This document shows, piece after piece, positions 8,103-61,944 of a stretch of DNA of 64,000 nt. The notes beneath the pieces are model-generated. The model was given only the letters and a program-made list of their open reading frames with translations, did not search any database and was not told the DNA's origin. Source of the DNA: Bugula neritina (Eukaryota; Animalia; Bryozoa). The stretch spans positions 27,978,628 through 28,042,627 of the forward strand of contig OZ037767.1 in the NCBI GenBank assembly GCA_964035545.1, in the 5' to 3' direction. The position numbers were made by a program, and so were the translations under genes. Position 1 is the stretch's first letter, and each line of letters opens with the position of its first letter.

Positions 8103-10600
8103 ATGAGCCACTCAAGACTTTTGCTATATGCCAAAGTGGCTGGCGGGTGAGACATATATACATTTTCCAAGATATTTTATTTATATTCTCTTTCACTTAA
8201 ATAGCTTACTTTTTTTCAGAGCATAGAGCAGTTTCCAGCATTAGATTTTTGAATTTGTCTAGAGTTTTTTAAATGGTCAGTGATGACTTTCAATGTTAAC
8301 CTTGTTTCACATAACAGTATCTGTTCATCTAAATAAATACAGCATATATAGTAATATTATTATATTCTACTACATAAGTAAAGGAACTAAAAGCGCTTCT
8401 TGGTTGTTTGTTTAGATTATTTGCTGCTGGAGTCGCTATGAAAGTAATATACAGTCTGTATAAATCTAAGAGTGAGAAGTCAGAGCTAAACTTGAATGTA
8501 CCTGCAGGCACCAATGAGCCTAAAGAAAATGTGCCCACCACAAGCGATGGAGTTGAGTCAAATACAGAAAGCTCAGCAACTACATCTAAAAATATTATCA
8601 AAAAAGCAGCCAGTAAAAAGAAAACCCCTGCTGCTGAAAATGACACATCAAATACCCAATCTATTAGCCAACATGCTGAAAGAAAAGACCAACCAATAGA
8701 GAAGACCACTAAAAGAGAGAAAGACTCTTCAGGCAGTTCTAAGAAGGGGGTACCTTCTACCAGCACACTTGAGGACTTTGTTGCACTGGATGCAAATGAC
8801 CATAAGAGAGCAGAAGAAGCCATTTCTAGAGTACTCGTACAATCTAAGCAACGCCTGCAAGATGTGGAATCAAGATTGCGAAACTTCATGATGCAAGACC
8901 CCAAAAACCGCAAGCAAGCTGAAGAAATTATGAACAAGGTGATAACAATGTCTAAAAGACGAGTATCAGAAGTAGAGTCGAGGATGAAGGATGTGGTAAA
9001 AATGGATTTGGAAAGTCGTGTAAAGGCAGCAGAAGCTATTAACAAAGCTCTTGGAGAAACAACTAAACAAGTATTAGAAAAAGAATCTCGACTTCAAGGT
9101 TTTGTTAAAATAGATGCCCCGCATAGGAAAAGTGCTGAAGAAGCCATTAATCAAGTTTTGTCCAAATTTAGAATGCGATTACTTGAAGTTGAATCAAGAT
9201 TCAGAGATTTTGTAGTGCAAGATGAATCTAGTCGACAGCAAGCAAAAGATGCAATCAATGAGATTTTCTCGGCATCCAAAAAGCCTGATGGTGCTAGTCA
9301 GATTGACAATCAGGGCTCAACAGAAAATGATTCTTCTGCAAATAAAATGCCGCAAAAGGATAATGCTTCAGAAGCTCAGGCAAGACTGCAAGATGTTGTA
9401 ACAATGGATTCAGAAAATCAGGTCCTGGCAGCTGAAACAATGAAAAAGGTTATCGCTGAGTCTGCAAGACGAATACTGGAGCAAAAGTCAAGGTTCCAAG
9501 ATTTTGCCAAGCTAGATACATCTAGGCGCCAAAGTGCTGAGGAAGCTATCAAACAGGTACTGACGGATTTCAAAAGACGCATGTCTGAAGTAGAGTCTCG
9601 GTTCAACAGCTTTGAAGTACAAGATCAATCAGCTCGTCAGCAAGCAAAGGATACAATTCAAAAACTTCTACAAGAACAAACAGCTAACTATAAAGGTGCT
9701 AAAGTAGCTGAAAATGACACTAGTGAAAATCTGCAAGGCAGTCCTGAGACAGAAGTAAAATCAAGATTAGATGATGTTGTAACTATGAACATAGAAAGCC
9801 AGCAGCAGGCAGCTGAAACTATGAAAAAAGTGGTGGCAGAGTCTGTGAGACGTATTGTAGACCAAAAGTCAAGATTTCAAGATTTTGCTAAGCTAGATGC
9901 AACTCGTCGTCAAAGTGCTGAAGAAGCTGTAAAGCATGTTCTCGTTGAATTCAGAAAGCGCATGATTGAAGTGGAGTCAAGGTTTAGCAATTTTCAAGTA
10001 CAAGACTCGTCAAGTCGTCAACAGGCTACAGCTGCCATAAACAAACTTTTGCTTGAACCAAGAAAAAGTGTCCAGGAAGATGGACAAAAAATTGAGAGTG
10101 AGAGTGAAAGCAAGAACTTATCAGAGATAAGGTCAAGACTGAAAGATATTGTAACAATTGACTCAGGAAGTCAAATGCTTGCAGCAGAAGCTATGAAAAA
10201 AGTCATCACAGAATCTGTGCGACGCATAAATGAACACAAAGCAAGGTATCAGGACTTTACTAAGCTAGACGCACCACGGCGTCAAAGTGCTGAAGAAGCC
10301 ATCAATCAAGTCTTGACCGAATTCAAAAAACGTGTGTTTGAGGTGGAATCCAGGTTGAACGATATAACTGTGCAAGATGAATCAAGTCACCAGCAAGCAA
10401 AAGAGGTAATCAACAAACTCTTGCAAGAGCCAAGAAGAGCCTCAAAAGATGGCAACCAAGAAAATCAGAGTAATGTTGAGCAACTCACTAAGAATGAAGC
10501 AGAAGATTTGTTGTACTATTTAAATGATCAGATTGGTTCTGATGAAGAGGCAGTGCACTCCTACAATAGTGATGAGTACAGTAGCGCGGTTGATGAGTAA
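8103..10600 (+). CDS. Orphan ~742-aa protein: N-terminal signal anchor, S/T/K linker, 14 x 36-aa amphipathic repeats, acidic tail
   Basis: Exon 8103-8146 (MSHSRLLLYAKVAG-GG|gtgaga, phase 2) splices in frame to 8416-10600 (tttag|A TTA TTT GCT). The ORF is 2.2 kb and uninterrupted. Repeat consensus SRxxDxxxxDxxxRxxAEEAIxxVLxExxxRxxEVE. AATAAA at ~10638. Confidence 0.85.
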
Positions 10601-11415: not shown

Positions 11416-18785
<7,370 letters not shown>

Positions 18786-29298: not shown

Positions 29299-32200
29299 TC
29301 AAACAGCAACTGTTTCCAATGTCTTTTCTTCCTCAGCTTCTTTCTCTGTTGTTTGTTTGACTCGACATAAGACATGATTGACTAAGTTTTCAGTTTCAAC
29401 TTCTGCAGATACAAGCAACATGTGGCTAAGACCAAACAGCTCTTTTATGTAGCAGGCAGAGATTAGAATGTGACATCATACATGTCGTTCAACTAACTAA
29501 TACATCTGATTAATAGAAGAAAACTGATTACATAAGGTTTAATGTCAATGTTAGCGATAATATAAATTAATGAGCTGGTTACATCTACAGTTCATTACCA
29601 TCTTCTGTCAGTAAATTACTCAACTCAATGACAATGTAATGTGACAATGAAGTACCAATGTAGTGACCATATAGTGCAAATGTAGTGACAATATAATGTG
29701 AAAATGCACTGATAATGTAGTGAGAATGAAGTGAGAATGTAGTGACAATGCAGTGACAATGCATTGATAATGTAGTAATAATGGAGTGAGAATGTAGTGA
29801 GAATAAAGTGATAATGGAGTTATGCTGTAGTGACAACCACAGGTTGAAGTAGTTGTTTCTATTTAACAACTTACGATGGAGAGAATCTGGTAATTCTTTG
29901 TTCAAAGTTTCCGGCAGCAGAGTAGCGACAAGGCCGGCAACAAGAGCAATAACTCCAAATATCACATAGGGAAGGCTTTTCCAGACGTCATCCTAAAATA
30001 TTGGTGAGTTACTTTCACAACTGTGAGCTAATGTATTACCTCCAAATTTTGTGAAAGTAACATAATTTATATTAATTAATATTGAGCCCTGCCTCGATTT
30101 TTATATATGATAGTTATGGAGCTGTATCCATTACATTTGCCTCACATTCTGTATATAAAAGTAACTGGTATTGAAACAGATTAGATTTTAAAACAATATT
30201 CGTTTAATTGTAGCCACAAACCTTGAAATAGCAAAGTTTGTACAAGTCTGTAAAGTATAGCATACTCCACAGAGATAGGCTAAATAGACCGATTGAAGGT
30301 ATGAGGTAAGTAAATCAAACTGTATGATATACTGAGCAGTGCATGAAGTCATCGTTACATACGCTGTGGGACACTTGCACTTACACTTTGATATACTTAT
30401 ACTGCTGTATACTTACACTGCTGTATACTTACACTGCTGTATACTTACACTGCTGTATACTTACACTACAGTATACCTACACTTACACATAGCCTGTGGT
30501 ATACTTACACTGAGAATCAGATACGGGGATAGAGCTCCTCCTGCCCTGGCAATACTTGATCCTAATCCAAGTGCAGTGACGCGTGCCTAAAGGTGTAAAC
30601 ACCATTATTATAACAGTAAATTGTATGAATAATAATGAGGCTTTTTATTCAAAAGTTAGATATGAAAATATGTTGGTACATCCACACCCACTAGGCATAC
30701 TCTACTAGGTTGATACTTACCACACTCGCTATACGTACTCTAATATCTCAGTATTTACTATATACTTACTCTAATATATCTCAGTATTTACTATATACTT
30801 ACTCTAATATATCTCAGTATTTACCATATTATACTTACTCTAATATATGTTAGTAGTTAGTACTCACTATATACGTACTCCAATCTGTCAGTATTCACTA
30901 TATACTTACTACAATATTATGTTGACACTTACTGTGGTTGGGTAAAGCTCTGCAGTGACCACATAGATCATCTCAAAATTTGTTTCTATAAATAGTTTGC
31001 CTACCATACTCATAGTTATGACTCCAGCTTGCATGCCTACATGAACATCATGGTAGTTATTAGCAAACAAAACCTGAGTTAATTATATCTGTACATTGAG
31101 GCCAATACATATTATACTAATTTCACACATTATTTGATTTTATTTCAATCAATATAAAAGTGACCTTAAATTACTAAAAACTATTTTGAAGTTGTCTACC
31201 GTATGTTGCAAAGATGGGAATAACAGCTGAGACGAGGCATGCAATTAGGAAAGCCGAAGAGATGGCTAATCGCCTCCCTAGTCTGATATACCAGATTCCA
31301 ACAAACTCCAAGATTCCACTTGCCTGCAGCAAGTAGTTGTTTGTAAAGATGTTGCCTGCAAGATTTCCTACAAACAGCGACATGGTACTATAGTAACTAT
31401 CTTCATACATATAACTTTATATTATATGCAGATAATTGTATTATATGCTGATAATTATATTATATGCAGATAATTGTATTATATGCTGACCATATTGTAT
31501 TATATATGTTAAGTAGAGAAAAGGCATAATGCAATATCTGTAGAGCAGCTGTTTTACGGTTTGTCCTCATTGTCAGCATAAAACAGAGTTCCATGCCCAA
31601 CACTTTTGTGTGGGCAATAAACTAATGTTTCCACCAACGCATCTTTAAAAAGTGTGCAAATTTAAGCTATGCAAAGAGCTCTAGTCTACACACACACACA
31701 CACACGCACACACGCACACACGCACACACGCACACACGCACACACGCACACACGCACACACGCACACACGCACACACGCACACACGCACACACGCACACG
31801 CACACACACACACACACATACACACACACACACATAACACACGCACACACACACGCACACGCACACACATACACACACACACACACACACACAGCCAGCA
31901 TGTGCTAGTATATTATCGGAATATTGGTATAGAGATATTGAATAACCTTGTATCAAGAGACAAGTTAGCTAGTGGCAGTACAATAGATTAAATTATGTAT
32001 ATTTAGATTGCCTGAATAAGATTAATTGCTACAGACCTGTATTGAAAGTCATTCCAAAGTAGACAATGGATACACTGAACCAGAGGGCACACACCACTAA
32101 ACTCTTGTGGCGAAGGTTGGGGGTTTTGAATAGGGAGAGTGCATTTCCTTCAACTTTTGGCTGTAACAGTACAACATACAGTACCTGGCTATAATGTACA

Positions 32201-35200
32201 TTCTATTGTAATGTACTATTATATTATAATAATTATATTACATTGCTTTAGTTATAATAAATTATTATATTATGTTTTAATAGATTACTTTAGTTATAAT
32301 AAATTTATATAATAAGTACAAATATGAATCAAAGATTAAGCCAATAAATACTAAAAATAAGTTTAAAATGTTTATTGTTTTGAGGAAAATTACAAGCCGT
32401 GTTGTCTCTTCTAGGCTCATAATATAGCCTTTGTTCTAACTGAATAAGTTTACTGCGTGACTTATAACTATACACATATTGACTGGAGCACTGCTCACAG
32501 GCTATGCAAGTTAGGATATTCTCATGGGCAGGCTGGCTCTAACAGTTTCATCAGTGTTTATACACAGTTAACTATTGCCATAGCTACTAAAGATGCAAAA
32601 ATTAAGCTATTACGTAAGCAGTAATAGCTGTGCTTTTTCTTCTACACACCTGATACTCAAGGTAGACGTGCAGGTTTTCTGGAAATTCTACTTTATTAAT
32701 TCTGGCTGATTTTTTGAAGTAAGCCACGGCTTCTTTTGTCCTACCCTGACTAAGTAGCCACCGAGGGGATTCTTCCATGATCCTGTGAGGATGATGACTC
32801 ATATATGATGCAGTTGGTAGAATATCATATAATACAATGTAATATATATTACAGCATAGCTTAAATATTGTTTAAAGATTGCAGTTATATATATATATAT
32901 ATATATATATATTACAATTATGTATATGTATGTATATATGTATGTATATTGTAACATTTAGCTGTTTAAAGTGTGTTGTAATGCATATTACAATAATATA
33001 GCTTGTAAATACTAAGGTATTGAAATATTATAACTATGCAATACAACATACACCCAAATCACAAATTCCTGGCTGTAACTTATATTTACATATACATACG
33101 TTGGTATAAATTAATGTTTTGCTGATAATGATTATTACCCATAGCTTGACAAGAATATAATTATCAAAGTAGGAATTTCTAGTGGCCAAAGACTTCTTTG
33201 ATGATGGAGATAAATAGCTTCAAACTTCACTTCCTTGATGCAATGTAGAACTTTCTATTTAATAGAAATTCTTGATAAGCCGACCAGTTTTTAAATAAAT
33301 ATGTTTTTATGTTTGAATATAATGTGTACCAATAGTAAGGAATGTAGAGTATGTAGCAGAGGGCACAGGCTAACTGAAAGTGTCTCCAATGAGGAAACAG
33401 ATTTGCAATCCCTGTAACCACCACACCGCCTATACTGTAGGTGACTCCATGGAGCATTCCAGCCGCAGCGCGATCTTTAATAATCTCACAAACTGTAAAT
33501 AAATTATACATGCTTTAGATGTCTTATATGTTAACAGATATGTTTTTTGTTATCATATATATTATATGATATCATATATTATATTATCATGTATGTTAAC
33601 ATAAGTTTTTAGTTATTCTATATGTTAGCAAATAAGCTTTGTGTTATCATGTATATCTTTATATATATCATTATATATGTTATATATATATTATCATATA
33701 TGTTATATTTATTGTCATATAATGTGTTTAAGTCATTATTTATGCAATTACCATGCATTTCTTTCAACAAGGATGATGTATTCACAAATTATTCAGGTCT
33801 TGCCTGATTTATTTGATTAAAAAGATTCATGCACACAAAAACATCAAAAAACATGATGAACAATAATTCTATATTAAGGTTTGATGCTAAAGCCAAATTT
33901 TGTTATTGCATTTGCATAAAAATAAAATTAATTTTTTACCGTAGACAAACCCTGCATTCCTGGCTCCAGCCGTAAATATTCCAAGAAGCAGTCTCATAAT
34001 GGCCAACATCCAAAAGTTGACAGAAAAGCTGGCAATGACTCCAATGACAACCATACAGATGTTGGAGACTAGCAGCAGTTTACTTCGACCATACCTGTGA
34101 ACAAAACCATCTCATACCTGTGAACAAAACCATCTCATACCTGTGAATGAAAACAGCTTATAGAGGCATCATTTAGTTTAAGAATCTACTGCATTTACTC
34201 CATACCTTGTAGAGGTGTTATCAAAGTTTGTCAAACATGAAAGATGTTTTGAAATTACAGCCTGAGAAATAATTGCTCCCACTGGGAATCGAACCCTAGA
34301 CCTCTGGCTTGCAAGCAAGTGTGCTAACCATTACACCACGGGGACCACTGAGTAAACTCATCACTACATAGCCGCTTCTTTTTACAAACTGCAATGTCTA
34401 TTTGTTGTTTCATTATTGTGATAAAAAGCTGTATCTTAAATCATTTCTTACTCAAGATTAGAATTATTGTATAGTACTTGTACTTGTTTCATCTGGTATG
34501 ATGTTTTATATTTTTAAATTTTCAACTGCCAACGCAGGCCTAACATTTCATTGGTTGACATCCCAAAGTTAAACTTATCCAATTGCTGATTGGCTTACTT
34601 GCCTCTAACAAATGACCCCATTGGCTGACCAAACTGTTGAGTTGTAAACTCACCTATCTGATAGGTCAGCCAAGAAGATACACCCAATGAGAAAACCAAG
34701 CATGTACATAGAGCTAGCCAAGGCAATCTTCCATTTGCCAGTACAAGAGTTAATGTCCCACTATAATATCAAACATCCTGTTAAATCAGCATTATAGTGT
34801 AGCCTATAAGGTGTCTATCTCTACTGACTTTCAAATATATTATTTTAGGTTCAAAATAAAACTGAAATTATTATATTAATTTTGATGCAAATATTAATTG
34901 TATAACAATAACCATAAAATAACAATAAAAATTTAACAATAATAATATAACAAGTTGGCTTTTCACGCTTCACAATAGCAACGAGCTAGCGTGTTCTCTC
35001 CCACGCAATAGCTTCAATGCTTCACATTACAACTGACTTTTACAGAAAGAAAAGAAAACAATTAATCAAATCTTGTGAATTTGAGAGTCTCATTTTAGTA
35101 ATTATCTGTTTCACAATGCAGATGCTTGCTTTGAATATGAAACATGTTCTGCAGTGATATCCATGATAAACAAGGGAGATAATGCACACCATGCAAAACA

Positions 35201-38200
35201 TAAAAAGCTACTGCTAGGCATGTACAATAAGGTATACTGTAATACATTTTATAGCATAGCATTCAACAGCGTATATCGTAACAAAAATTAAATAAAATCT
35301 ATATATTTTGTTAAACTGCTACATTCTATAAAATTATAAGTTTGTATAAAAAAGCCTGAAATCTCATACCAGAGCAGCACTTAGCCTCAGCTCCTTACTT
35401 ACCCTACCCAGAATGCCGGGCTCTCACAACCTCAAACATTTTCACTTGCATATTTTCTAAGATGTAGCATAACGTGTTTAGTATTGCCTGCTTACTTCGG
35501 ACATGATGGTGAGGTCAAAAAATGACTTATCGTACACCCAGCTGTAGCACTTTATATTCTTTTCTATCATTACTTCTGTGATGTTTCCATTTATCCCATC
35601 TCCATATCTGGCCAACTTGTTGTATGTACATGTGTCTAAACAACAAAAAGTAGTTATTGTTCATAATTATAAAGTACAACTTTATGTTGTTGTTAAAAAC
35701 TGCATACCGTAAGGTAATTTAATCCTTTGCTTTCAACACCCAATCAGCTGCTTTAAGTTATACCCATGCAATGAGAATGAGTGGTGTTTTTATAAGACTA
35801 ATACAAAGGCATGAATTGACAAAGACTGTAAAGAGTGAAGAGAGATGCTGAAGTCTAACATGTCAGAAACACGTCTAAAGCACTGTGCTCAAAATTTTAA
35901 TTCTACCTACAAGTTGGCTAGTTTGATAACTAAACTATGTTGTCCAAATAGATTCAAAAATAAGAGCCTGTAACTTCCAAACAGTGTCTAAATATCGGAT
36001 TTCTTCAGTTCTTATGATTGTACATCGGCACTAGAGTTCAGAGAGCACACAATTTCTACGTACCTGCAGTATAGACTAAAACAGCAGTTTTATTGTTGAA
36101 GTCAGTCCAATTAGAAGAGTCTGGAACTTTGCAATGATGTTCTTGGGTGGCACCAATAAATATGTAACCATTGTTGTTGAACACACAGGAGAAAGTCACC
36201 AATGAAAGCAGAACTAAAATACAAACACAACTTCAATTTTAAGCAAACTTGGAGGTTTTCAAATTCTGCTTGTGTTTTATTCTGGTGATGTAGCCGTTAT
36301 GCAATAATATACCACATTGAAAATGATGAAAGTGCAATTATATAAACATTTTTCAATAGCTTATTACTCAAAAATTGTTATAACTAATCCCGGTGGTAAT
36401 TGACTGTCCCAGGAATCAAACTGTAAATCTGACTTCTTAATAAGCTGCAGCAGTTAGAATTTCTATAGTAAATAATTCTTTGCTTCGAACGCCCATCTAA
36501 TTCAACAAAACTAATACATGCATACTTAATGCCTAGCAAATGTCAATACAGTGATGAACAAGGAGATGCAGTATGTGCAAATATAAGCCACTTATCATCT
36601 TCCAAAGCATGCATACAGACATGAGCCTTTGGCGCTTGATGGCTCAGGAGGGAATTGATTTACATGATAATTATAAGTTAGCTGATGTAGAAAGCCTGTC
36701 TTGTAGCTGACGGAGAAAGTGATGGGACTATGCATTAGATAGAAAGTAAGCTACGACGGTAAACAGTTGGAGATGAGTAACACCACGCATGTGTTTGATT
36801 GATGAAATGCAGTGGGAATTCACAGCATAAAAACCAATAAGTTATTATGCAATATGCTATTTTATTTTAGCAACTCCTGATCCTAGACTTTAAAGAAAAA
36901 TTCTCTTTCCAATTTACAGAAAGACATGTTGGCTGGTGGTCAGCACAAAAACTAAATTATTTGGGAAACCAGCATTAGGGTTAGTGTAGCACACCACCCC
37001 TGAACTTACTGAAGATTATCACTTGATAGCGGCCAGAACCATACTTGCTCATAGCTTCTTCATAAGACAAGCTTTCGCATGAGTCATCTCCAGATGAAGT
37101 GCTGCCATCACTCTCCGACTTATTGGCCCCAGAGTCAGCATAGTCTGCTGGCTCGTTCTTGGAGGCAGCGTGAATTTCACGGTCAGGACTAGGATCAACT
37201 GGCAGGCTATAAATACATGTATCTAGCACTAAGAAGGTTGAACAACAAACTTGATCATTCTAGATCATTCTATCATAAATGCTGTTATTGACCAGATTTT
37301 AATATGTCCAATAGAAATGAAACCACTCTTTATAGTTTAACAAAAAACTTCATCACTTGATGTAGTAAAGCTATAATTACCATATTGATGAATAGCTATG
37401 ATTGATAATAATAAAAATAGCTAAAAGTAACCAACACTAACTAGTGAAATAAATAAACCTCTATTTTATTCAATAAGGAATAACAAAACATGACTGAGTG
37501 TTGCAGTGCCATAGGAGGTTAATCTAACAACTCCCTTTGCTATTTTAACGACTGCTTTGTTGCGTAGCTTGTTGTTTTATAGATATATAGTAAAGTAAAG
37601 TTCTTGCCTAACTAGTTGTGTAGGAACCTAAGAATTGTGTTTTTAGTAAAAGTAAACTGTTAGCGAAGGTGATGACTAAACTTATACAATGTTTTGCAAG
37701 TTATTATTTGCAGAAATTTTATAAAATGGGAAAGGTTATTTGTATATGTTGCAATTCAGCCAGGGAAACATGACCACACACGCACGCGCACACACACACA
37801 GCAAGAGTTGAGGATTTTGTACTTAAATCACATTGGTCTGCCAAAATGATGGTGATAACTTTAAGTGGGTATAATTTGCACATGTATAATAACTCACAAT
37901 ATGGAATGTTACACTGATATAATTCTTCAAGTCCTTGAAAGGCCAACTAGTTAATTTATGTAGATAGAGAAGTAAATAACATAAGTCAAATGACAGTTAT
38001 ATTAATATTAGTATTAATATCTGTTTTACAGACTAACTATAAAACTTGAAACTAGCGTAAGGTAATGTTCAGTTTTGCAACAAGCATGTAAATACTAATA
38101 TGTCTTTACATTAATTATCACATTTCTTCTTAAAACTGCAGAAATATAATGTAGATTAAGCACACTCGGTCATGACACCGCATATAAATAGGTCTTTTGA

Positions 38201-38792
38201 GCTTGAACTCAGGTCTTTGATTAATGCTCTGGTTAATCTATTACTGCAAGAACTGTAGCATTGATGTATAGCTAGCTGATGTATTTGTCACTTCATCTCC
38301 TATTAGTGATATTTTATATGGAGTGTAAAAGCTACCAAATAGCTTTTATATTTTAATTTCCAACGTATTGCATATATATAAAAAGCAATATAACATCGCA
38401 TAATACAACATAATATAATATAATGTATTATAATGTAATATAGGATTGCTGAATATAATTGTAGCTATATCAACTATAGGCCTACCCTTTCTAAAAAAGC
38501 ACTGAAAATCAGCCTTTCCAGAAATATTTACGTTTGTTGTCTTTGCTATTAGTTTTGCTCATATTTTATTCAAAATAGAATAAGAAAAAAATTGGCCATT
38601 GCCAAAAGATCAAAAAGCTAAATGCAAGTCAATGTTTCATGATATGCATGAAACCACTCAACTTGAACACATGCTCATATTGCATAGCATTTAGTAATAA
38701 TAATAATTGTAACTAATCAGTTTTACTAAGTGTGCTAGCTTAGAATTTACTTACTTCTTGTATGTTCCTGGTAAAACTTCATCCGTCTCCAT
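29299..38792 (-). CDS. SLC22-family organic cation/anion transporter, paralog A (MFS)
   Basis: 14 coding exons from ATG 38792: 38792-38755, 37206-37010, 36213-36064, 35635-35496, 34760-34654, 34094-33940, ~33492-33330, ~32782-32650, ~32160-32037, ~31367-31200, ~31036-30933, ~30586-30509, ~29992-29875, 29402-29299. Motifs [44 protein letters not shown]. Confidence 0.92.
29620..29835. repeat. ~11-bp degenerate minisatellite (aatgtagtgac) in the last intron of SLC22-A
   Basis: Visible periodic repeat. It creates the spurious His/Ile/Ser extension in ORF 29585..29965. Confidence 0.85.
30370..30512 (-). repeat. 16-bp tandem repeat of a 5' splice site (cagtGTAAGTATacag on - strand)
   Basis: atacttacactgctgt is repeated, and the copy nearest the exon is the real donor. 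Confidence 0.9.
30710..30935 (-). repeat. ~33-bp tandem repeat carrying GTAAGTAT donor copies
   Basis: tatacttactctaatatatctcagtatttac is repeated downstream of the ELYPTT exon donor. Confidence 0.85.
31688..31892. repeat. (CA)n/(CACACACG)n compound microsatellite
   Basis: Visible directly. Confidence 0.97.
34091..34150 (-). repeat. 23-bp tandem triplication of a 3' splice site (ttttgttcacag|gtatg)
   Basis: atacctgtgaacaaaaccatctc x2 plus a third partial copy. Confidence 0.9.
34275..34369 (-). mobile_element. tRNA-derived repeat (pseudo-tRNA with shared 5' leader), copy 2
   Basis: Reverse complement reads atgtagtgatgagtttactcagtggtccccgtggtgtaatggttagcacacttgcttgcaagccagaggtctagggttcgattcccagtgggagc. 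A and B boxes are intact, but anticodon and T stems are mismatched. Confidence 0.75.
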
Positions 38793-40521
38793 AATATTAC
38801 TGCCTGATAGAGATAACTTTCACCAATGACAAGAGGCACACGAGTTAGATGTAAACTGTCAGTCTCCTGTCGTAGGTCCTGCGATCATTAATCACTCGCG
38901 ATGAATTGAATTACAAAAATTATGGATCTTTGTGGTGAAATATTATAATCAGATAGGGCAGTATCCTTGTATAGATGAAGTAAAAGTAGGGCTGGCTTAA
39001 TTCTGAACCCGTAGTTAGATGTAGTTTTGAATGCTGGTTCTAAATATGTAATGGTAGACTAAACTAAATAGTTTGTTTAGAAGTTATAATGTAATTTGCA
39101 AAAATCTATTTTTTTATTGACACAAATTCGCAAGATGAATGTAATGCGGTTTCTAGTTACGTATCTTTTATACACAGTGCGTTGTATTACTGAGCTTGTG
39201 GGAAATCAAGCGTCACGCTATATTATAGGGCTAGGCTGCCAATAGTAACATGTTTGCTCGAAGCTCACCATAGCAACGGCAATAACATAGTTAACCAGAA
39301 ATGCATATACATGTACATTGAAATTCATTTGCTGTGCAATAGGTATAAGGCTTTCAAAATAACTTTGTTTTAATAAAGTTAGCCAGTGAAAAAATTATAT
39401 TTGCAATTCCCTAATTAAAACTGTGCAATGTTGGAAAAATCATTCATAGCCCTCCCATCATGACTCTTTGCATTATCGTTATCGATTTTGGGGATACCAT
39501 TTACATGCCTCCGTGGAAGTATCAACTTTTCCAATTGGAAAAATGGTGCCATAGACTCTTCTTTGAGTTATTGAAAAGACAAATTATCATGTAACAAGTT
39601 ACTGCTTACAGATGAAGTGATAATAGTAATTATAGACGAGCCCGCATGCAGCTTACAACACGACCCACATGCATGTTATTCATTGCACTCTACGCTATAG
39701 CTTATTGTCTAGATAAAGCATATAACTTCTTGTAAACCCAGTCATCTGGTGATGTGCTACAAACCCACTCAAGAGCTAAAATTAACTTGCAACTTACACT
39801 ATGCAACTAACAAACGCATTAGCGAATAATTAAAATATTGTGTTGCTAAAGATTTACTATAATTGCTAAAAGTGGAAGCTAAGCTTATACAGCTACTTTT
39901 ATGAATTCCTTACATCCCGATGAGTTTATTGACTTTTTATCAGCTTATTTGGCCATTTTTACGCTGTGGCAAATTAGGAATCAATAAAATTACGGTTCAC
40001 AGTGTTCTGGATGCCGGCTGGGCTTATTAATAAGCATCCAACACCACTCGTACATTAAGTGGATGAAGAGTATGGGGAGTTAACTACTAACAATGAAACT
40101 ATAATGATGGTTGGAATTCTTGATTTTTGCTGCCTATGCCACTGTGGCACATAAAATTTCGAATATTTTTTCTGTATCCAGGAGAGGTACTACATTAGGG
40201 ACATTTATTTTAAGCTAGAGTGTTTTTACTTCTACAGCATTTTACTTTATTGAGTACATACCATAAATAATACTTGTGTTTTTTCAACATATTTTATTAC
40301 ACTTCATTTTTTCAGCTAGCAATACCATTAAGGTAATTGGATTTTGTGGGAGGGGGCATTTTATAAAACTGCTAAGTCAAAAAAGCAGGGGCACCTACAG
40401 ACAAAAACAGCAATTGATTTGTTATGAAACATCTCGTATTCTTTTAACAGACCCATATTTTTGCTCAGACTATGAAAGAGCTTCAAGTCAAACAAAACTT
40501 TATAATTATACAAGTTATTAT

Positions 40522-43500
40522 TTATGCTGTGACTGTGGCAAGTTTTTTCATAGCTTGTTCGTCGATTTCTTCTTTTTCCTTTTTGCAGCAGTTGAATGAA
40601 TTTAATGGGTTTTCATTTTCAGCCTCTATACATGTAAAACAATTTCAAAGATAAATAAAGACAATCAAATACAAGATTAACTCTCAATTCTACAAATGAA
40701 CCAGTAATCAATAAAGATTTATCCCTGTTACTTATCTACATGTATTTGATTTTTGATTATAAGCTTTATGGAAGATTCTAGAACATTCCACAAGACTTAC
40801 GATGAAGTGAGTCAGGCAATGCTTTTTCCTTAGTCTCTGGTAATAGAATAGCAAACAGACCGGCGATCAGGGCGACAACTCCAAAGATGACGTAAGGTAG
40901 GCTTGGCCACAGGTCATTCTAAACATACAACTAGTTGAACATGTCTTAAAGAGATAACTTGACAGCAAATAGGTATTATGCTGATGTCATCTGTTACTGA
41001 TCACTTCTGTAGTAGATTTTATCGAAATGATTAAATGACAATTACTAACTTTCTTTATGGAAATGCATTCTAAAACTTTTACTGATGTCTTGTTAGAATC
41101 TTACACTGAGAGCCAAGTATGGGGCTATAGCTCCCCCAGCCCTAGCGAGAGCTGATCCTAGACCCAGGGCTGTAACTCTAGCCTACAATTGCATGTAGAC
41201 ATGATCATACTGTGAGTGCATAAGTAAAGACAGTACTATTTAGATGGAATTATATTATAATGATATGATTATCCTATAACCAGGTGAGTTATATTTTACC
41301 ACACTTACTATACTTACTGTAATAAGTTATTAATTACCACATTTACTATAGGCACTTACTCTAAAATGTTAATAATCACCACACTTACTATACTTACTCT
41401 ACTTACTATATATACTTACCCTAATATGGTATTACTTACAGTTGTTGGGTAAAGTTCTGCTGTCACAATATAAATCATCCCAAAATTTGCTTCTATGAAT
41501 AGTTTGCCTATCATACTCATTGCTATGACTGCTCCATCAATACCTGAATATGTATGATGATGTAGAAACAAGGCAATGGAATTATTTACAATTATGGAGG
41601 AGGCAAATATATAAATACATAAAACAACATTTTATTTAAAGAATGATAGTACTTCTGTTCATGTTGCTAAAAAGACTAGTAAGTTTTAAAACCCCATAAA
41701 ATAGTGTGATAGCCTGTATTCTACAATCCACATTTATATATCAGCGAAGGTAAATATGACCGTCCCGTGCCTACCATATGAAGTGAATATAGGGACAACA
41801 GCACACATGGCACATCCTATGAGGAAGGCTGTAGAGATAGCCAACCTTCTACCAAGTCTGATGTACCATATTCCCAGGAACTGGAGAACTCCACTCACTT
41901 GTAGCAGATAATTGTTAACAAAAATGTTTCCTCCTAAATTACCTGTAAGAAATTTTATTAATTACTGCAGTGGGGTGTTAATAATGTAAATGATGAAATA
42001 CACTATCAACATAATACATGGCAGGGTAAAGTATAAACTTAATCAATATTCAGGTAAAATAATGCATTAGAGTCATATCATGTATTGTGCTTTCATCAAA
42101 AAATTGTTGTTTTTAAAAATGACTCCAAAAACATCTATCGTTGAATTATACTATTATGCGAAAAAATAATATTATTATTATATATATCCCTATGTATTAT
42201 AATTCATAATAATTATGTTATATTAGGTTATATAATATGTTACAATATGTTAAGTAATATTATTATATATTGTCATATGTTATAATATTATAATATAGTT
42301 ATGATACATGCATGCAATATATTTTATTACAGGTGGTACTATAACTACCAAATAGTACAGAATATAAAACACTGGATGAATGGATTGAATGAGTTTCAAT
42401 ACTAATGACACTGAAACAATGAAGTTATAGTCTTACAACAATATATGTCAATAAAAGTGTGTGCCTTTTGTCCAAAACCCATTCAGGTTAAAAAACCCGC
42501 TAAAGTTCACGGCATTACAAGAACAACAAAAATATTGCAATACAAAAGATATCAAATGCTGCATAATTAAAATTTAACCTTAATGACAGGCTGTTTGTTC
42601 ACTGCTAATACTTGAAGCAGCAATCTACACAAATTATTCACTAATTGCTCATTCAGAGCACTTGAAAAAATGCAATGATAATTAATAATGTAATCATATA
42701 ATGAGATTAGCATTGCTGCCAGAACTAGTGTATGCTGACTATACCTGAAGATGTCTTACTAATGGAATTTAATCATATTAACATGTTTAAGCTAATGCAC
42801 ATTGGACCTAGCTAACTATGATTATACTTATATCAGGTGCAGTCGCTGTGCAGTTTTCAGCAACCGTTATTCCTTCCGAAGTTTTATATTGCGATGAGAA
42901 AAAATAGACTTGAATGAAATAGCTTATAATTAGAATATCAGAAGATGAATCTCCCACCTTTGGTTATATAATGATGTGAGGGGAGCACATATAGCTTGTA
43001 TGATATACTATTACTTGTATTATAATAAAACATATGTATTATGTACTATTATATAACACACATTTTACATGATAAACATTATATAACATATGTTCTATAT
43101 GACATATTATTACTCAATATTTGTTCTAAATTTTATCATATTAGATGTAGGCTGTTATAAAAGTATGTTACCTGAATTAATTATGTATTAAAAAGCACTG
43201 ACCTACGTTATAGTTGATTCCAAAGAACACAATCGACACACTAAACCATAGCAATGAGACTAACAGGGTCTTTTTCCTAAGATTTGGAGTTTTAAATAAT
43301 GAAAATACATTTCCTTCTTTGGGTTTCTGCAACATTAAACAAATTACTTGTGTTAAAGTTTTATTTACTAATGGAGACTATAAGAACCTTTCACATTTCA
43401 CTTTTCACTGTCAACATGCTAGAAATTAATCGTAAATGTTTCAATCTAAACGAAAAAACTTGTATTATAAAGCGTCAAGTATGGTTGCATTCTACACACC

Positions 43501-46500
43501 TGATACTCAAGGTAGACGTGCAGGTTTTCTGGAAATTCTATTTTATTAATTCTGGCAGATTTCTTGAAGTAAGCCACGGCTTCTTCTGTCCTACCCTGAC
43601 TAAGTAACCACCGCGGAGATTCTCCCATTACCCTGTAACGAAGACATGTATATGCAACCACCGAGGAGATTCCCAATTATCTTGTAACAGCAACTGCAAA
43701 CCAAATAAAATACTAGATTAATTAACACAGATAAATTTTTACGTTTTTTTGTCATTTGAGTTCCTGTATAAAGCGGCTATCAAAAAAATTAACCTTGCAT
43801 GTTATTCTGTTAGCATTAATTTGAAGGATTTATCCTACAACATCTTCTCTTACCCTCCCCCTCCGATGATAAGGGTTTTTAAGTAGGCCAAGGAGTGTGC
43901 TTCTAACACCTATTATAGCTAAAGCTATTGTTATGACTATACAGATGCTTTTATTGACAACACCGATAATCATGCTGCTAAGATTTGAACTTATTTGACT
44001 AATTGTCAGAATTACTAGGCAGCGCTCAAACCGCTAGACTTTCTCCAATTATCAAGTTATCAGTTGTTGGTAGATGGTACTTGTCAGCAAATTCTCGCAA
44101 GTTATGAAATGCACTACCATAGTAAACAATATAAAATAATACTCAGTGAAGAGAATATATTATTATACATATGTTGTAAATTTTTGTGGGATGATAACCC
44201 CATATTACAGCAATAGAAACAAATTATTGTTGCTAAAAAGTAGTTAGATACCTAAACTGTTGATATTCTGTTGTGAAAAATATGGAAACCTAGTCTAATA
44301 GCATACAGTAATATTTATCTTCTGATAAATTTGAAGGCTGTAGGAATAATTATTACTAAAGAAAATAAAGTTCTAAAGTTCCGGACAATGTCAGACATTT
44401 AATTTTATCACATTATTTGCTGTATTTAATTACTTCACAGATATATGAAATATGATGATATGTACCAATAGTATGGAAGGTAGAGTAGGAAACAGAGAGC
44501 ACAGGCTAACTGGAAGTTTCTCCAATGAGGAAACAGATGTGCAATTGCTGTCACTACAACACCGCCTGTACTGTACACTACTCCATGGAGCATGCCAGCC
44601 ACAGCGCGATCTTTAATGATCTCACAAACTAAAAGGCAGTAAAAGAACTTATTTCATATTTGAGAAATGCATAAACACTCTGTATAATTTATACAAAATA
44701 ATTATAACAGCTAAATTAAACATGCTACCAGTGTGTCAAATCTTGAAAAATATATCTACTAGTTCAGTAAGCATGGAGCTTCATCCAGTATAGTTGCTAT
44801 AATAAAGTGAAGACAACTCTGCTAACAGCTTTTAAAGAGTTCAAGTTACAGCAGACTATTCATTCTTGGTATGAAATGTTAGCTTATGAGCATAGCAAGC
44901 TAAGAGTATCTTTTTGAATTTGTATTACGCAAGGCAAGTAACTATGACAGTGTTATTGACAGACAAGTGACAATCTAACAATCTGTCATAATGACATGTG
45001 TCATGCCTGGTCATGTAATCTTGGCAAGTGTTGATGACAGGTATTAAAATTGCCACTGCAAATAATTGAAACAGGATTTTCGTATAGCTGCAGCTTTTCA
45101 CTTGCTGTATACACATCTGTATTACAAGAAAAATTAATATTTTTTACCGTAGACAAACCCTGCATTCCTGGCTCCAGCCGTAAATATTCCAAGAAGCAAT
45201 CTCATAATTGCTAACATTGGAAAGTTAAGAGAGAAGCTGGCCACTATTCCAATACCTAACATAGATACATTTGAAATAAGCAACAGTGTGGCCCTCCCAT
45301 ACCTGCAAATATTAAAAATTATAGCTAAATAATAAAACAATATTTTGTTAAGATTTTAACTTCAGCTTGTTAATAATTTTCTCATTAATCCGTTTTATTT
45401 AATATGCATTTATAAATTGTGCTTTTATTTATATAAATAAGCTTAAAGTTTTTAAACTATTATGCATATTCAAATTTTGTTGAAAAAACTTTATATTTAT
45501 AATTTTAAAAAAATCAGTTGGATAAATTGAAAGTTGAAAGTCACCCTACCTGTCTGATAAATCGGCTAATAGGATGCAGCCAATAAAAAATCCTATCATA
45601 TATAGAAAACTGGCTAAAGTGATTAGCTCCTTGCCTCCATTGCAAGAATTCAAGTCCCACTGCAATACAATGCAACATTATTTAAACACTGTAATAAAAA
45701 TAAATACATTATCTATTGTCTGTGTATCATTGTGTTAGCTCAGTCTATTTTTATACTGTCATAAAAAAATTTATTCCACTTCTGATTTGTAGACATTCTA
45801 TTGTTGATAAGGGCTTATATTTTGGACTTTAGTATGATGTATTTACAGACTGTAACTTACCTCAGACATGATGGTAAGGTCAAACACTGAGGTATCATAC
45901 ACCCAGCTGTCACATTTTATATTCTCTTCTATCATCACTTCTGTAATATTTTCATTTATTCCATCTCCATATCTGGCCAACTTGTTGTATGTACATGCGT
46001 CTAAACAACAAAAACAGGTAGCAACAATGAACTGAATTACCATTGTGATTTTTAACTAAGGATGCTAAAAGTTTCGAAACATTTTGTTTTCAGCTTTTTG
46101 CAATGGGAAGTCAATAGATTAATAAATATTCAGAAAGTGTTTTTAGTACAGTATTCATTGTAATTTATTATGTAAATGATTATCTAGTATAGGTATCAGA
46201 TGATGTCAATTTACTGCTTATTAAAGTTTATATTTATATTATTAAATTGCTCAGCAATTGGTTTCTATAGAGATAAAGTATTTTCAAAACATAATAAACA
46301 TTTTATTGTTTGATTGAATTGTGATTGTGTTGCCAATATGGCCCTGTTAGTTCCTGCCTTTACTGTTATTGCTGAATGATCGTTTCCTGCATAAAATAGT
46401 CAGCTTGTACTTACTGTTGTTGGTTACAGAATAAGTACGCTGTGTACTTATGTACTTACTGTAGTTGGTTACAGTAAGTACAATCTGTACTTACAGCCCC

Positions 46501-47180
46501 TGATGGCTCCTAGATATTTCATATGAGACGAGTATTTTACAAGAAGAAATATGTATATACATTTAATAAGATGCTTTAAAATGCTATCTCTGGTTAGTTT
46601 TAAATACAATCTAAATTATAAATTAAAGCGTTTAACATCAACACAATGTTAAATAATGTCCTAATAACAATGTTAAGCTGGGAATGAAGTTTATTTGAGA
46701 GAAGGTAATGCACATGTACTTGCAGTGTAGACGAAAACAGTAGTTTTGTTGTTAGAGTCAGTCCTATTAGAAGACTCTGGAACTTTGCAATGATGTTCTT
46801 GGGTGGCACCAATAAATATGTAACCATTGTTGTTGAACACAGTAGAGAAAGTCACCAGTGAGAGTAGAACTAGAATATTACAGATTAATGCAAGACAAGG
46901 TGGATTTAGAACTGCATAGCAAATATATGTAACTTTACATTCAAGGCAACTAATATTTATATTAAAGTATCATAGTGTCTAGTGAATTTATATGGAAGAT
47001 TCTGGAACAATACACAGGACATAACTCACTGAAGAGAACAAGCTGATGTCGGCCAGTTCCATACTTTACCATAGCATCTTCATAAGATATACTCTCATAG
47101 CCTTTACTTGCTAATCCGCCATTTGTAAATTTGCTAGCTCCCTCTGGTGCCAGTTTACCATTTCCCAAATTTGCAGCCAT
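40522..47180 (-). CDS. SLC22-family transporter, paralog B (tandem duplicate)
   Basis: 13 coding exons: 47180-47030, ~46869-46720, ~46000-45861, ~45659-45550, ~45302-45148, ~44628-44466, ~43632-43500, ~43328-43203, ~41942-41775, ~41543-41440, ~41182-41105, ~40918-40801, 40625-40522 (TAA). Same intron positions and motifs as paralog A. Confidence 0.92.
41290..41440 (-). repeat. Degenerate tandem repeat rich in GTAAGT donor copies, SLC22-B
   Basis: ccacacttactatacttact is repeated in the intron equivalent to paralog A 30710-30935. Confidence 0.75.
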
Positions 47181-53323: not shown

Positions 53324-56300
53324 TTATCTATTTGTGGGGGCGAGAGGTGTCCCAGCCCGCTTTGAGTGGACTTGTCTCTGTCGAGCTAGGAATGACTGTC
53401 CAGAGCCATACTGTTGCAGCCGATCATCCACAGCCTTTCTGTGCAGATTCATACCCATATTATACCTGCATAGAGACAGACTTGTACTATAGACAGTTAC
53501 AACTGTTGGAATCATCGTAACCAATTTGTTGAAGAATCAGAAAGCCAGAAAGAACTACTCTCATTGCTGAGCCTACTAGTACAATGGGCAGACAAATCTA
53601 AACATTGCTCAGTATGTGTGTGTAAACGACGAATGGAAATTGACTTTGTGGTCAATCCTGCTAAAAACCAGCAGACCAAGAATTGTTTGTGCTGCTGCGA
53701 GTAAGCATGAGATCTGGTGGTAGAGCTCATTGCGAGACTCAATACTGAGACACAAGCTGCTGTAGGCGACTTACCACGCCGACACCATAAGCTTTTCTTC
53801 TTGCTCTCGTATCGTCCTTTGACGTTCGGACTCTTTCTGAATTTGCGCTACAAGTTTTTCTTTCTCCAAAAGTTGTGCCTAAAGAATACCGTAAACAGTG
53901 AACGAGCAGCGAAATAAGTAACAAGCATCAAGTAATTTAATTCAATGAACATGAAACACTAAACAAATAACCAAATAAATGCTGACAGAGAGATAATGAA
54001 AGAGAGAGGATAGAGAAGAAGGTTGAACATACAGGTAGTTGTGCGAAAGCGACGAGTAACTGAATTGAACAGGAAGTGGGGACTAAGGCTATCACCATTA
54101 CCGCCTTCACAGCTAATTAGTGGTTTATGTATGCCGACAGGTGTGGTGTCATTGAGATGGCAGTGTTCACGCATGCGTCTATGGAGGAAGGGAGATATCG
54201 GCTTGGTCACAGGACTGCACACTCTCTTCGGACTAACTGGGTCGTTGAAGAAGTTGGTGATGGGATGGATGAGAGAGGATATTGGTGGGAAGGTTTTGGT
54301 GGGTGAGTGAGTGAGGTGAGGAGAGCTGGTGGGTGTCTAGATTATATCATGTAGAGTGTATATATTGTATAACAAATCACTATCTATGTATTCAATGAAA
54401 TCTATATAATAATGCACTTTAGATAAAGTTGGATCTGTTATCGTTATAATACTCGTATATACACAAGCACACGCATGCATTATATTATACACAAATCCAA
54501 TATATACAGCTAATTATGTACACGAGAAGACAATTCTGATAAAACAAAAAATCACATAATTGCAGTTTTAGTAATTAGTGGGTGCTAGCCTAGGGCTGAT
54601 ATAATTCCATAGAGCTAATACACAGCCTTATGCACCCAAGTTAACTTAACAGATAAATGAGGCTATTGAACACCATATAACAGATGTATAGAGTTCACAG
54701 GGTGCAATACACTGGATATATTAAACACTAATATACCAATAGAGCAGACATTCTACTGAACTGATAGGACTTCATATATAGAAGTGTTAGGGCGTACACA
54801 ACGCTGTACGTAACACAGGAGAAGGTGACAGACATATACTCACTCTGAGAACATCGAGCTGAGGAGAGAGAGCGGGATCAGCGTTCTGACTAGACTCCAT
54901 CTTATTAATAACCGTCTTGGCTTTCTCCAAATACTTCTTGTACTTCTCCTCCGTCTCCTTCATTTCATTCTCCCTTTGCTGAAGTTTCTCTACAAAATCA
55001 CAGCCAGACGGTGAAGAATACATCTTATACTGTACGGTTCTAATGCACACAGAGATTAGTATTGGGAATCTAAACTATACAAGTATTACAGACTGTCGCA
55101 GTATTCCAGCAGTAAAGTCAGGATGTATGTTTTTAGTGAAAGCGTATTGTTACTGCTAGTTACTCAAACACCCCTTAGACAGAGGGTGGAGTAAACACCC
55201 CTTAGACAGAGGGTAGAGTGAACACCCCTTAGAGAAAGGATAGAGTAAACACAAACCATCTTTCTCCTTCAGCTGCTGGTTGAAGTCAGCAATCCTGCTG
55301 TCGGCTGTCTCAATGTGCTGCTTCTTCTTGACCAGCTCCGAGTCGAGTGTGCGAACTTTCTGAGTCAGCTCTGTCAGCTTCTTCTTCAACTCTCTGGTGG
55401 CATCACCGTCTCCTACAACAACCGGCAGCGGTGAGGCAACTCCGAAATGCACCTCACTAACATATGACCACCACACCTTGGAGTTTATAACAACTTCAGT
55501 TTGCACTCCCTTTAATAGATTAATATACAAATTTGCCTTTAAGATTGTAGTATGACAACAAATTCCACAAAAAAATTCTTGCGAAAAATGTTTGATTATA
55601 ATAAAAGTTAAAAACCCTGCAGCATTTCAAATATATTTTTGTACAAGTGAACACAATCACAATCGTACTAAAGATGGACTTACACTATGGGAAACTAATA
55701 ACAAGGTAAATTCAAAAGAAAAAGAATGTTGTGAACTATACGTAACTACATTCTAACTAAACGATATTTATAACTACATTACAACTGTGAGCTATATGTA
55801 ACTACATTTATAAAGCTAAAGAGAGTATCATATGACAATTCATCTCACTTTGTGCAGATGTTATTATAATTAACAAAACCATTCAAGGTAATTATTCACC
55901 AACAATGGTACAGCAAAGGACAACATACTGCAACATAATATACACAGTGTGTATTACACATAGTCCAGTGTGTTAGGATGTAGAGGAGCTAGCACATGCA
56001 CAGAGCACACTGCTAATATAACTATTATGATCTTATAAGTTGTCCCCACCTGCTACTTTCTGATTGGCCTCTTGCAAGTCTTCAACCTGAGCCTCCAACT
56101 CCATAACTCTTTGGTTACTGATCCTAGGGGATAGAAACATACTCTATTTATAACATATATATTCTATTTATAACATATATATTCTATTTATAACACGTAT
56201 AATCTATTTATAACATCTATACTCTATAACACATATACTACCTGCTGTCACTCTCCAACTCATTCACTCTGCTTTGAGCATCTTCCAACATGGACTGTAC

Positions 56301-59300: not shown

Positions 59301-61944
59301 AGTCTCGTACTTTTTCACTCTTTCTTCATTTTGTCGAAGCACGTCGACTTCGTCTTTCAATGATTTAGCCTCGTCTGCCAGAGTTGCTAAAGACTCCGAC
59401 TACAAAACATTCCACAGCAATTAGCCTCGTTAAAACTATCTCCAGCCCACCACCACATTCTATATTGCCTAAACTGTGGCAGGGTACATTAATTACATGG
59501 TCTACATAAACCAGACAAAAAACATTTAAAATCAACAAACATACGCAAAACACAATGTAGAAATACATTTCCGTTTTCACAACTTCCATTTTTTCTCTTT
59601 CTAAACAGTGAATGACTGAGGCAGTGTATGGCAGCACTCTATATCTGACTCACCTTGTCTTTTAGTTCAACCAGCTCTTTGCTGCAGAACTCATACTTGA
59701 GACGGTAATCTTCTTTTGCCGCATCAAGTCTGTAGACCTCATCTTTATACTGCTCCAGCTAAAACAACAACTACTTCATAATCCAACAATTAATGCACAA
59801 TTTTTTTTAACAAAATGTGAAAAAAAGTTTACTTCAAACGACAAAGTAATTTGTTGGCACAATTCTATATCAGAGTAAAAATTAAAGTAAGCATTTAAAC
59901 AAATCAGCTCTCCTAAAAGTTCAACAACTTCCCGTATTCGCAGTGCCTTATTACCTGTTGTTGTAAGGCGAGGTACTTTTTACCAGATGTGGTGTTTGGG
60001 TCATCAAGGTCATCAGCTACTTTATCAGTTATGGCTTCACTGTGATTTTCTAGATGGTTCTTTTCTTCTTGCAAACTTGCAACCTACAGCATACACAGGC
60101 TTTCTAACTGTGGCTAAGACCAGATCCACATATTCAGTAGAATACAGTATTGGTAGAGCTAAACCAGTAGAATAGAGTATTGGTAGAGCTAAACCAGTAG
60201 AATAGAGTATTGGTAGAGCTAAACCAGTAGAATATAGTATTGGTAGAGCTAAACCAGTAAAATATAGTATTGGTAGAGCTAAACCAGTAAAATATAGTAT
60301 TGGTAAAGCTAAACAAAACATACATCATTTGGTTAACTTAAAACATGAAGATTTGTTGGTTATATGAAGGCTAATTTACAGAACACACATAGCGTACAAC
60401 AGTAAGTTTCAGCGAGTTACAAAGTTCAAAGGTTTCCATTTCATTGAAATATGTTTAAATATATTTTGAACATGTTTAAAAACTAGCCAGCCTTTAAGAA
60501 GTAAAACTTCTTTCATAAGTAGGGTGAAATGAATTTAAAAAAAGATAAAAATTCAAAACTCATAGACTACATAACATGAAATTATCATTATGGATTAAGT
60601 GTCTATTGACTGTAGCAAATGGCAAGTAAATAAAAAATGCACTTCAAGTTTTAAAAACAATAAAAAAACTTGATGACTAAACCTTGACTCTACTGAGCAT
60701 CAACATCACAAGTTAAAGGAAAGTTTAGCTTTTCAAATGCTAATTTAAATATTTTAGTATGACTTGTATAAATGAAGTAATTCAATTCTTTCTGGTATGC
60801 GAGTATTTTGATTTTATAAATTCAAAGAAGACGTGTCCATGAATGACTGAGATATTTAGCCGCTACACGAGCTTGTCATGAAATGCATCAAAATTTGCAA
60901 TCAGATAACACCCAAGTGAAAGCAATTTCCCTTGCTCAATTAACCAAGTCTATCCAAACAGTGTAAAATGTATTTTATAAAATATTTTTGCTGCTGCACT
61001 AAATTACAAATTTTCACCAAAAAGAAGGCCCAACAATCATGTTTTGTTGAGTGCATATAAAAAATTGTTTGCATTTCTTAATAACTAATCCGTGATGGTT
61101 ATCTTTGAAATTTCTCAATTTATAATTATCTTCTAGTATGACCCTAACATTTCGCGTTAATAACAATCTTTGGGGGGGGGGGGGGGAAAGAGGGTAGCCT
61201 ATTAATAAAATATAATAATATAGTTAGAAGATAACTACATGAATTATCCTAAAATAATTTGAAATTATTAGATAACATCAGTTGAATAAGCAAGCCATTG
61301 TACCTGAGCTTTGAAGAAGTAGAAAAAGGTATATTTATAGCTCTTACTTGCATATCTAGTTCACTGCACCTCTGAGACAAATCAGCATTAGCCTGTTTGG
61401 TTTCAGCCAATTCTCTTTGTAAATTAGCTAACTGTGTGGTTACATCGACTCCATCATTATCAGCTGATGACAGAGTGCTACTTTCTTGAGTCATCAACTC
61501 TTGAATAGCAGTCATAACTCCATGTTGAACCGACTCCTCCATTCCCATAATAGCCTGGATGTAATCCTGCTTATTGTCACAGTTGACCGCACAACCCAGC
61601 ACTAGTTGCAACAAGCGTCCCATTTCTAACAAATTTGTGTTTTCCACAATCATTTTTAAATTTGGCTTTTTATTTTCCTGAATATTCATGCCAATTTCAT
61701 CATCATAAAAAGACAAAACTGCTCTTAATATTTTTTTAAGATTACTAATCTTAATGTGCTTATTACTAGCTTGGTCAACTTTTATACCACTGAGCCATTC
61801 ATCATCAAAAAATGAAGGAGAGACTTCGTGTAGTATTTGAGCCAAGGCTGCTCCATTAGCCAGAGCTTGAACTGAGTCTCTTTCACCGTCCACAGAAAAT
61901 GTTTGAACCCACATGAGCAGGCATTCTGCAAGTTCCTCATCCAT
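53324..61944 (-). CDS. HOOK3: Hook microtubule-tethering protein (dynein activating adaptor), HOOK3-like
   Basis: Exons 61944-61348, 60083-59955, 59758-59654, 59399-59247, 59004-58891, 58672-58471, (57633-57568), 56419-56242, 56123-56050, 55411-55258, 54989-54844, 53878-53775, 53465-53324. N-terminal Hook domain with EMGRLLQLVLGCAVNC..KQDYIQAIMGMEESVQHGVMTAIQELM. Also YKKYLEKAK and the C-terminal EEKLMVSAWYNMGMNLHRKA...SFLARQRQ. Probably the single invertebrate Hook rather than a strict HOOK3 ortholog. Confidence 0.96.
53959..54336 (-). CDS. Candidate alternative terminal exon of HOOK encoding an S/T-P-rich linker and a C-terminal TM anchor
   Basis: Acceptor ataatctag|ACA, phase 0, matches the phase-0 donor at 54844. 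125 open codons end in MFNLLLYPLSFIISLSAFIWLFV-stop. ATTAAA at 53941-53936. The segment is visibly GC-richer than flanking intron. Confidence 0.7.
   Translation of the reverse strand, partial: TPTSSPHLTHSPTKTFPPISSLIHPITNFFNDPVSPKRVCSPVTKPISPFLHRRMREHCHLNDTTPVGIHKPLISCEGGNGDSLSPHFLFNSVTRRFRTTTCMFNLLLYPLSFIISLSAFIWLFV
55170..55256. repeat. 27-bp tandem repeat x3 at a HOOK donor
   Basis: aaacaccccttagacagagggtggagt repeated. Confidence 0.9.
60135..60312. repeat. 30-bp minisatellite x~6 near the HOOK exon 2 acceptor
   Basis: cagtagaatagagtattggtagagctaaac repeated. Confidence 0.95.

Follow-up and report, generated by a model that had tools for sequence, protein, structure and literature searches.

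The tenth intron of the HOOK gene of the bryozoan Bugula neritina very probably contains a real, conserved hidden exon (hereafter exon X), and comparison of this intron with those of relatives suggests that exon X is probably an internal cassette exon which, when joined to exon 11, would shift the reading frame. A preliminary description of the same DNA had proposed a hidden alternative last exon at this place. That an alternative exon is hidden in intron 10 is supported by orthologous frames, shared motifs and acceptor phase in six lineages; its terminal position is not borne out, as a T|GTATG donor sequence precedes the hydrophobic stretch in five lineages.

In the window (the whole stretch of 64,000 nucleotides that was analysed), HOOK lies on the minus strand and was modelled with 12 exons, giving a stop-free canonical product of 699 aa. 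This isoform possesses both the N-terminal HOOK domain and the coiled coil with FTS-binding C-terminus that mark a Hook protein. Exon 1 (61348..61944, minus strand) encodes the HOOK_N domain (Pfam PF19047, E 2.7e-54), which in known Hooks binds the dynein light-intermediate-chain, and PF05622, representing the coiled coil and the conserved C-terminal FTS-binding segment, matches exons 10, 11 and 12. Exon 10 (54844..54989, minus strand) ends in phase 0 and aligns with residues 590-630 of human HOOK3, thereby spanning most of the KIF1C site (607-632). The canonical frame of exon 11 (53775..53878, minus strand; 104 nt) corresponds approximately to HOOK3 636-668, i.e. to the FTS-binding CC4; the alignment, made on 8QAT, is weak (E 0.15), with the Pfam match as additional support. 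The last exon, exon 12 (53324..53465, minus strand), carries the canonical stop at 53326-53324 and, as the second codon of the shifted frame, a TAA at 53462-53460.

HOOK is the sole Hook gene found in a search of the genome, apart from which one weak 28.7-bit piece was detected elsewhere, and the possibility of a second Hook gene was therefore rejected. A transposon or repeat origin of the intron 10 open frame was rejected as well, since intron 10 and its ORF are single-copy in the genome. FHIP-family genes are present in the same genome. Among named Hooks, the nearest belongs to another bryozoan, Watersipora subatra (72-79% identity over exons 9-11). Elsewhere in the window, the ORF at 8408-10600 (plus strand) runs uninterrupted for 730 aa, contains internal helical repeats and matches no Pfam family. 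Exon pieces at 13033-14988 (plus strand) resemble CDC5L, and those at 29585-47180 (minus strand) an SLC22-type transporter.

The elements reported for the intron 10 frame could be confirmed. The acceptor AG (54338-54337, minus strand) is in phase with exon 10 and opens a frame of 125 codons (54336-53962, minus strand) closed by a TAG at 53961-53959, and an ATTAAA hexamer follows 17 nt past the stop (53941-53936, minus strand). The GC content is higher in the ORF than in the remainder of the intron (0.47 vs 0.33), and the approximately eight S/T-P sites that had been noted were counted as exactly eight, against 3.4 expected (p ~0.004), two of them being full CDK consensus sites (SPTK and SPKR). 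When intron 10 is shuffled, 2-3% of the copies contain a frame of 125 codons opened by an AG, and the in-phase acceptor is weak evidence because its AG is part of the in-frame TAG at which the ORF starts. The best 19-residue hydropathy of the ORF (2.14) is found at its end; stop-free 19-mers with a hydropathy of at least 1.8 occur in 10% of the 50-codon intron frames of HOOK, and A[AT]TAAA is expected by chance in 17% of 154-nt intron stretches, so that the hexamer and the hydrophobic end carry little weight as evidence. The 125-aa frame matched no homologous protein of 69-219 aa, no Pfam family and nothing in an atlas search, three blanks that say little. What had been overlooked is a donor sequence, T|GTATGT, inside the ORF at 54032.

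The genomic DNA of intron 10 was compared among L016 (a very close relative), species A (six assemblies: L014, L015, L018, L024, L027 and L045), L021, L017, L019, L028 and Watersipora (L023). These relatives were gathered by a search with exon 10 and a metagenome scan, and most are metagenome or run assemblies that may hold errors. L029, the only bryozoan transcript found, displays canonical 10-11-12 splicing without exon X, which is likewise missing from both RefSeq isoforms examined in Watersipora, where further isoforms may exist. Intron 9 is shared by the window, L016, L028 and Watersipora but absent from the genomic DNA of L014 (1395-1691), L015, L018, L021 and L022, in which exons 9 and 10 are contiguous. 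Intron 11 (window 53774-53466, minus strand) is richer in GC (0.42-0.45) than the neighbouring introns and contains an open frame of ~80-100 codons with no match in species A.

As delimited here, exon X (54033..54336, minus strand) would be 304 nt long, that is 101 codons plus one nucleotide, and its S/T-P-rich sequence includes SPTK, SPKR and PVGIH motifs and ends in an amphipathic helix. An S/T-P-rich frame with [ST]PTK and PVGIH, located behind a phase-0 AG of the same intron, was found in L016, species A, L021, L017, L019 and L023 (in the last, Watersipora, at 17853/17856-18084), and the acceptor is in phase 0 in all relatives inspected. Alignments of the window sequence with those of L017, L023 and L019 score z 5.3-6.4 over shuffles; the sequence of species A is tied to the window via L017 and L021 and not directly. 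Columns P-T-K and VGIH are common to the X orthologues, and the end of the exon is a segment of high hydrophobic moment, which ranked first in 4/6 sequences. An SPTK-like motif occurs twice in the window (HSPTK and CSPVTKP, within 54306-54190, minus strand) and once in the relatives, possibly owing to an internal duplication. In L028, a shortened candidate for exon X was identified (PAGVHR followed by an amphipathic end), the alignment of which is not significant.

Amino-acid constraint on exon X is weak. Among the six alleles of species A its pN/pS is 0.63 and no indel is observed; relative to L016, exon X has no indels either, where the flanking intron shows several, and three of its four changes are nonsynonymous. 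One of the six species A alleles (L015) has an in-frame TAA at 2667, 30 codons into the exon, representing either a null allele of the X isoform or an assembly error. Stops and frameshifts in the orthologous intron of relatives, which the preliminary description had named as evidence against its exon, were found in the part encoding the proposed transmembrane segment (TM), while the X part displays a conserved frame with a single nonsense allele.

In every lineage that reaches the donor, the length of exon X is not a multiple of three and leads from phase 0 to phase 1, the splice sites being placed by conservation. The putative 5′ splice donor of the window, GTATGT (54027..54032, minus strand), is in phase 1 and would read C-M if left unspliced. 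T|GTATG is found, always in phase 1, in 5/5 lineages reaching that point, and similarity between the sequences ends at C-M. In the window, the stretch from the acceptor to exon 11 contains 27 GT sites, of which the GTATGT at 54032 is the best U1 match; among the five lineages T|GTATG ranks first or second in four and low in L019. The same hexamer serves as the donor of HOOK exon 4, and the exonic side of the exon X donor is non-consensus. L028 has C|GTAAGA at the corresponding place, also in phase 1. The codon following the ATG is TTC, TCT, TAG, TTT or CTG, so that the T at +6 is kept in 4/5 lineages while the amino acid varies, as expected of a nucleotide signal.

The pyrimidine-rich read-through past this donor (53959..54032, minus strand), which encodes the proposed TM, is conserved neither in length nor in content. 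It remains open for 23 codons in the window, 72 in species A, none in L017, 23 in L019 and 2 in Watersipora. Its hydrophobic part behaves neutrally in the six alleles of species A (pN/pS 1.8; L024 carries a 1-nt insertion and L027 a stop), and the stretch of L019 arises from a 31-nt tandem duplication (1117-1178) that copied the donor and left two GTATG sites. Since a shared phase-1 donor sequence precedes the stretch, which is itself unconserved and, in species A, neutral with a frameshift and a stop, the proposed TM is best read as intron read-through. The tail anchor that had been thought to end the protein is not supported either, as the stop lies 0 and 2 codons past C-M in L017 and Watersipora. 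By contrast, the view that this is no KASH domain stands: KASH (PF10541) has no match at the HOOK locus or in the orthologous frames, and the window frame stops right at the end of the hydrophobic stretch, with no luminal peptide ending in PPPX. In the whole genome no match to the Pfam KASH model exceeds the cut-off, the model being short and its target possibly split by an intron; SUN-domain genes are present. When read through its donor (L023 18084-18098), the Watersipora sequence ends in CMFV, a CaaX-like box; a conserved C-M or CaaX protein end was rejected, as CMFV occurs in no other lineage.

If exon X is spliced to exon 11, the latter must be read in the second frame imposed by the donor, and this frame is open in the window, species A, L028, L023, L019 and L029. 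Within species A it is open in 5/6 assemblies; L014 has a stop, and the two changes concerned also alter canonical residues, possibly through assembly error. Wherever exon 12 is available, the shifted frame stops at V-TAA just within it. Where a T would be synonymous but introduce a stop into the second frame, exon 11 has T at 0/22 sites, its codons there varying nonetheless, vs 299/774 (39%) in the other exons, while the other third positions of exon 11 have T in 23/74 cases; the Fisher p of 2.6e-5 for this difference overstates it, the lineages being related, and counting the approximately seven distinct sites once gives an estimate of roughly 0.03. Given the canonical residues and codon usage, the chance of an open second frame is 0.10-0.30 per lineage. 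When the CDS is scanned in windows of 35 codons, just 2% of these lack a stop in the imposed frame, and in both species tested exon 11 lies within the longest stop-free run that this frame has anywhere in the CDS. Stops in this frame of exon 11 were detected in 7/10 non-bryozoan control loci, several of which are near-identical and most of which cover part of the exon.

The peptide encoded by the second frame is not conserved in sequence, and identical codons are less frequent in exon 11 (0.24) than in the other exons (0.33-0.59) in the one species pair compared. An open but unconserved peptide suggests selection for openness, that is for escape from decay, rather than for particular residues. 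Two ways of ending the X isoform otherwise were considered. A hidden downstream phase-1 exon with a TM or KASH was sought in the window (to 50500) and in L014, where nothing is conserved beyond exons 11 and 12, and an AG internal to exon 11 that would restore the frame was judged implausible in view of its purine-rich context.

Readings other than a cassette joined to exon 11 have to be weighed against these data. It is rather unlikely that exon X is, or is also, a terminal exon, the weak donor being skipped, the frame running on to 53959 and poly(A) being added after the ATTAAA, which would yield a 743-aa tail-anchored Hook as a lineage-restricted by-product of the cassette. The donor is indeed weak, the hydropathy peak of 2.14 falls at the extreme end, and the 79 nt past the donor contain no substitution relative to L016 and only an in-frame 6-nt indel; the conserved tract could, however, equally be a U-rich splicing enhancer, of the TIA-1 type that acts behind weak donors, and the U/C-rich intron yields hydrophobic stretches in 10% of frames. 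Species A and L019 likewise read through into such stretches, yet that of L019 is a product of the duplication, and that of species A has suffered the frameshift and the nonsense change and evolves at a pN/pS above one; the poly(A) hexamer, moreover, is missing from this intron in species A and L028. The early stops of L017 and Watersipora tell against this reading too, and the precedent of ZYG-12 (PMC2717649) has to be set against the absence of a hydrophobic C-terminal tail from all 194 Hook proteins of at least 550 aa.

We consider it unlikely that exon X is spliced in while its protein matters little, whether as a switch that lowers the amount of FHF-competent Hook or in a form joining X to exon 12 and ending in C-I-[IT]-W-[VE]. 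The weak amino-acid constraint and the nonsense allele are compatible with such a switch, and a Cys would be preserved on joining to exon 12, given the T that five lineages have at donor position -1; nevertheless, the peptide motifs are conserved across lineages, and only the joining of X to exon 11, with decay avoided, accounts for the open second frame of the latter. It is very improbable, finally, that exon X is a chance or decaying frame of a C-rich intron that is never spliced. The length of the ORF taken alone (p 0.02-0.03), the want of any protein, family or atlas match, the nonsense allele in L015 and the degenerate look of L028 would all suit such a frame, but lineages whose introns are otherwise unalignable have homologous frames in which motifs, acceptor phase and donor are the same.

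A frame-shifting cassette would allow one gene to make two different proteins. When exon X is skipped, exons 10-11-12 give the ordinary 699-aa FHF adaptor; when it is included, splicing at T|GTATGT to exon 11 would carry translation into the second frame for 35 codons and end it two codons into the last exon, so that the mRNA should escape nonsense-mediated decay. The predicted product is a soluble Hook of ~755 aa (618 + 136 + 1) that would end in a disordered tail, with the dynein-binding N-terminus, CC1-3 and the greater part of the kinesin-3 site retained. Because it would lack both CC4 and the C-terminal extension, it is not expected to form a complex with FTS/FHIP; the FTS/FHIP1B-binding CC4 (653-688) and helix (694-702) are encoded by the canonical frame of exons 11-12 and are absent from the X isoform in either of its forms. 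Loss of CC4 may also weaken the CC2/CC3-CC4 autoinhibition. In the new tail, the PVGIH motif and the amphipathic helix might provide a new cargo or peripheral-membrane contact, and the [ST]PTK site might place the tail under CDK-type control. CDK control had been suggested earlier from the S/T-P sites; the CDK-consensus [ST]PTK is conserved in six lineages, and the control itself is what we infer from it. On sequence grounds, the X form may be seen as an adaptor that works independently of FHF and whose contact with cargo differs, possibly being of the peripheral-membrane kind, and is under phospho-control.

The preliminary description had contrasted a soluble FHF adaptor with an integral-membrane isoform bypassing FTS/FHIP. 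Of these, the bypass is supported, in that the FTS/FHIP-binding end would be lost, whereas integration into the membrane is not, the TM being unconserved. A more far-reaching version, namely that bryozoans evolved a splice switch freeing Hook from FTS/FHIP and giving it a cell-cycle-regulated tail able to reach membranes directly, through the amphipathic helix in all lineages and additionally through a read-through anchor in the present lineage, in independent parallel to ZYG-12, seems doubtful to us.

If confirmed, the X isoform would be a natural FHF-independent Hook, with the FTS/FHIP-binding module removed and the motor-binding parts kept, useful for the study of Hook function without FHF and of the release of CC4 autoinhibition. 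Exon X, so far limited to one phylum, is also a clear example, for comparative work, of how an unannotated frame-shifting exon can be recognised from the avoidance of stops in the second frame of its neighbour. No X-like isoform was detected among the 194 long Hook proteins (the screen for hydrophobic tails covered all of them, that for S/T-P-rich tails only the first set), and our literature search found nothing on bryozoan Hook, on this exon or on an X-like Hook isoform.

Cryo-EM of human HOOK3 has located the binding of FTS and FHIP1B at residues 653-688 and 694-702 and that of KIF1C at 607-632; FTS and FHIP1B enclose the extreme C-terminus, cargo is reached via FHIP, and in the autoinhibited state CC2 folds back onto CC3-CC4 (PMC11996680). 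Like HOOK3 of the FHF complex, the bryozoan protein has HOOK_N and HOOK domains, and its exons 11-12 match CC4 and the C-terminal extension. Unlike HOOK3, its X isoform would replace the equivalent of residues from ~635 onwards, so that none of the three FTS/FHIP contact sites would remain, in contrast to the KIF1C site (607-632), most of which would be kept. The arrangement resembles non-triplet splicing with a dual-coding exon, as in C. elegans tnt-3 (PMC13247117): a 3n+1 cassette sends the next exon into its second frame, here for 35 codons, and translation ends in the last exon. Dual-coding exons tend towards raised conservation at wobble positions (PMC13247117), a trend that exon 11, whose third positions are not more conserved, does not follow; unlike those cases, too, most of the new sequence would come from the cassette itself, and the present one is known from genomic sequence. 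Within the Hook family the closest comparison is C. elegans ZYG-12, two of whose three isoforms possess a TM-containing KASH domain (PMC2717649). The bryozoan HOOK differs from ZYG-12 B and C in having no KASH match, luminal peptide or conserved TM; like ZYG-12, however, it is one Hook-family gene with, putatively, alternative C-termini that would be expected to shift the site of dynein recruitment.
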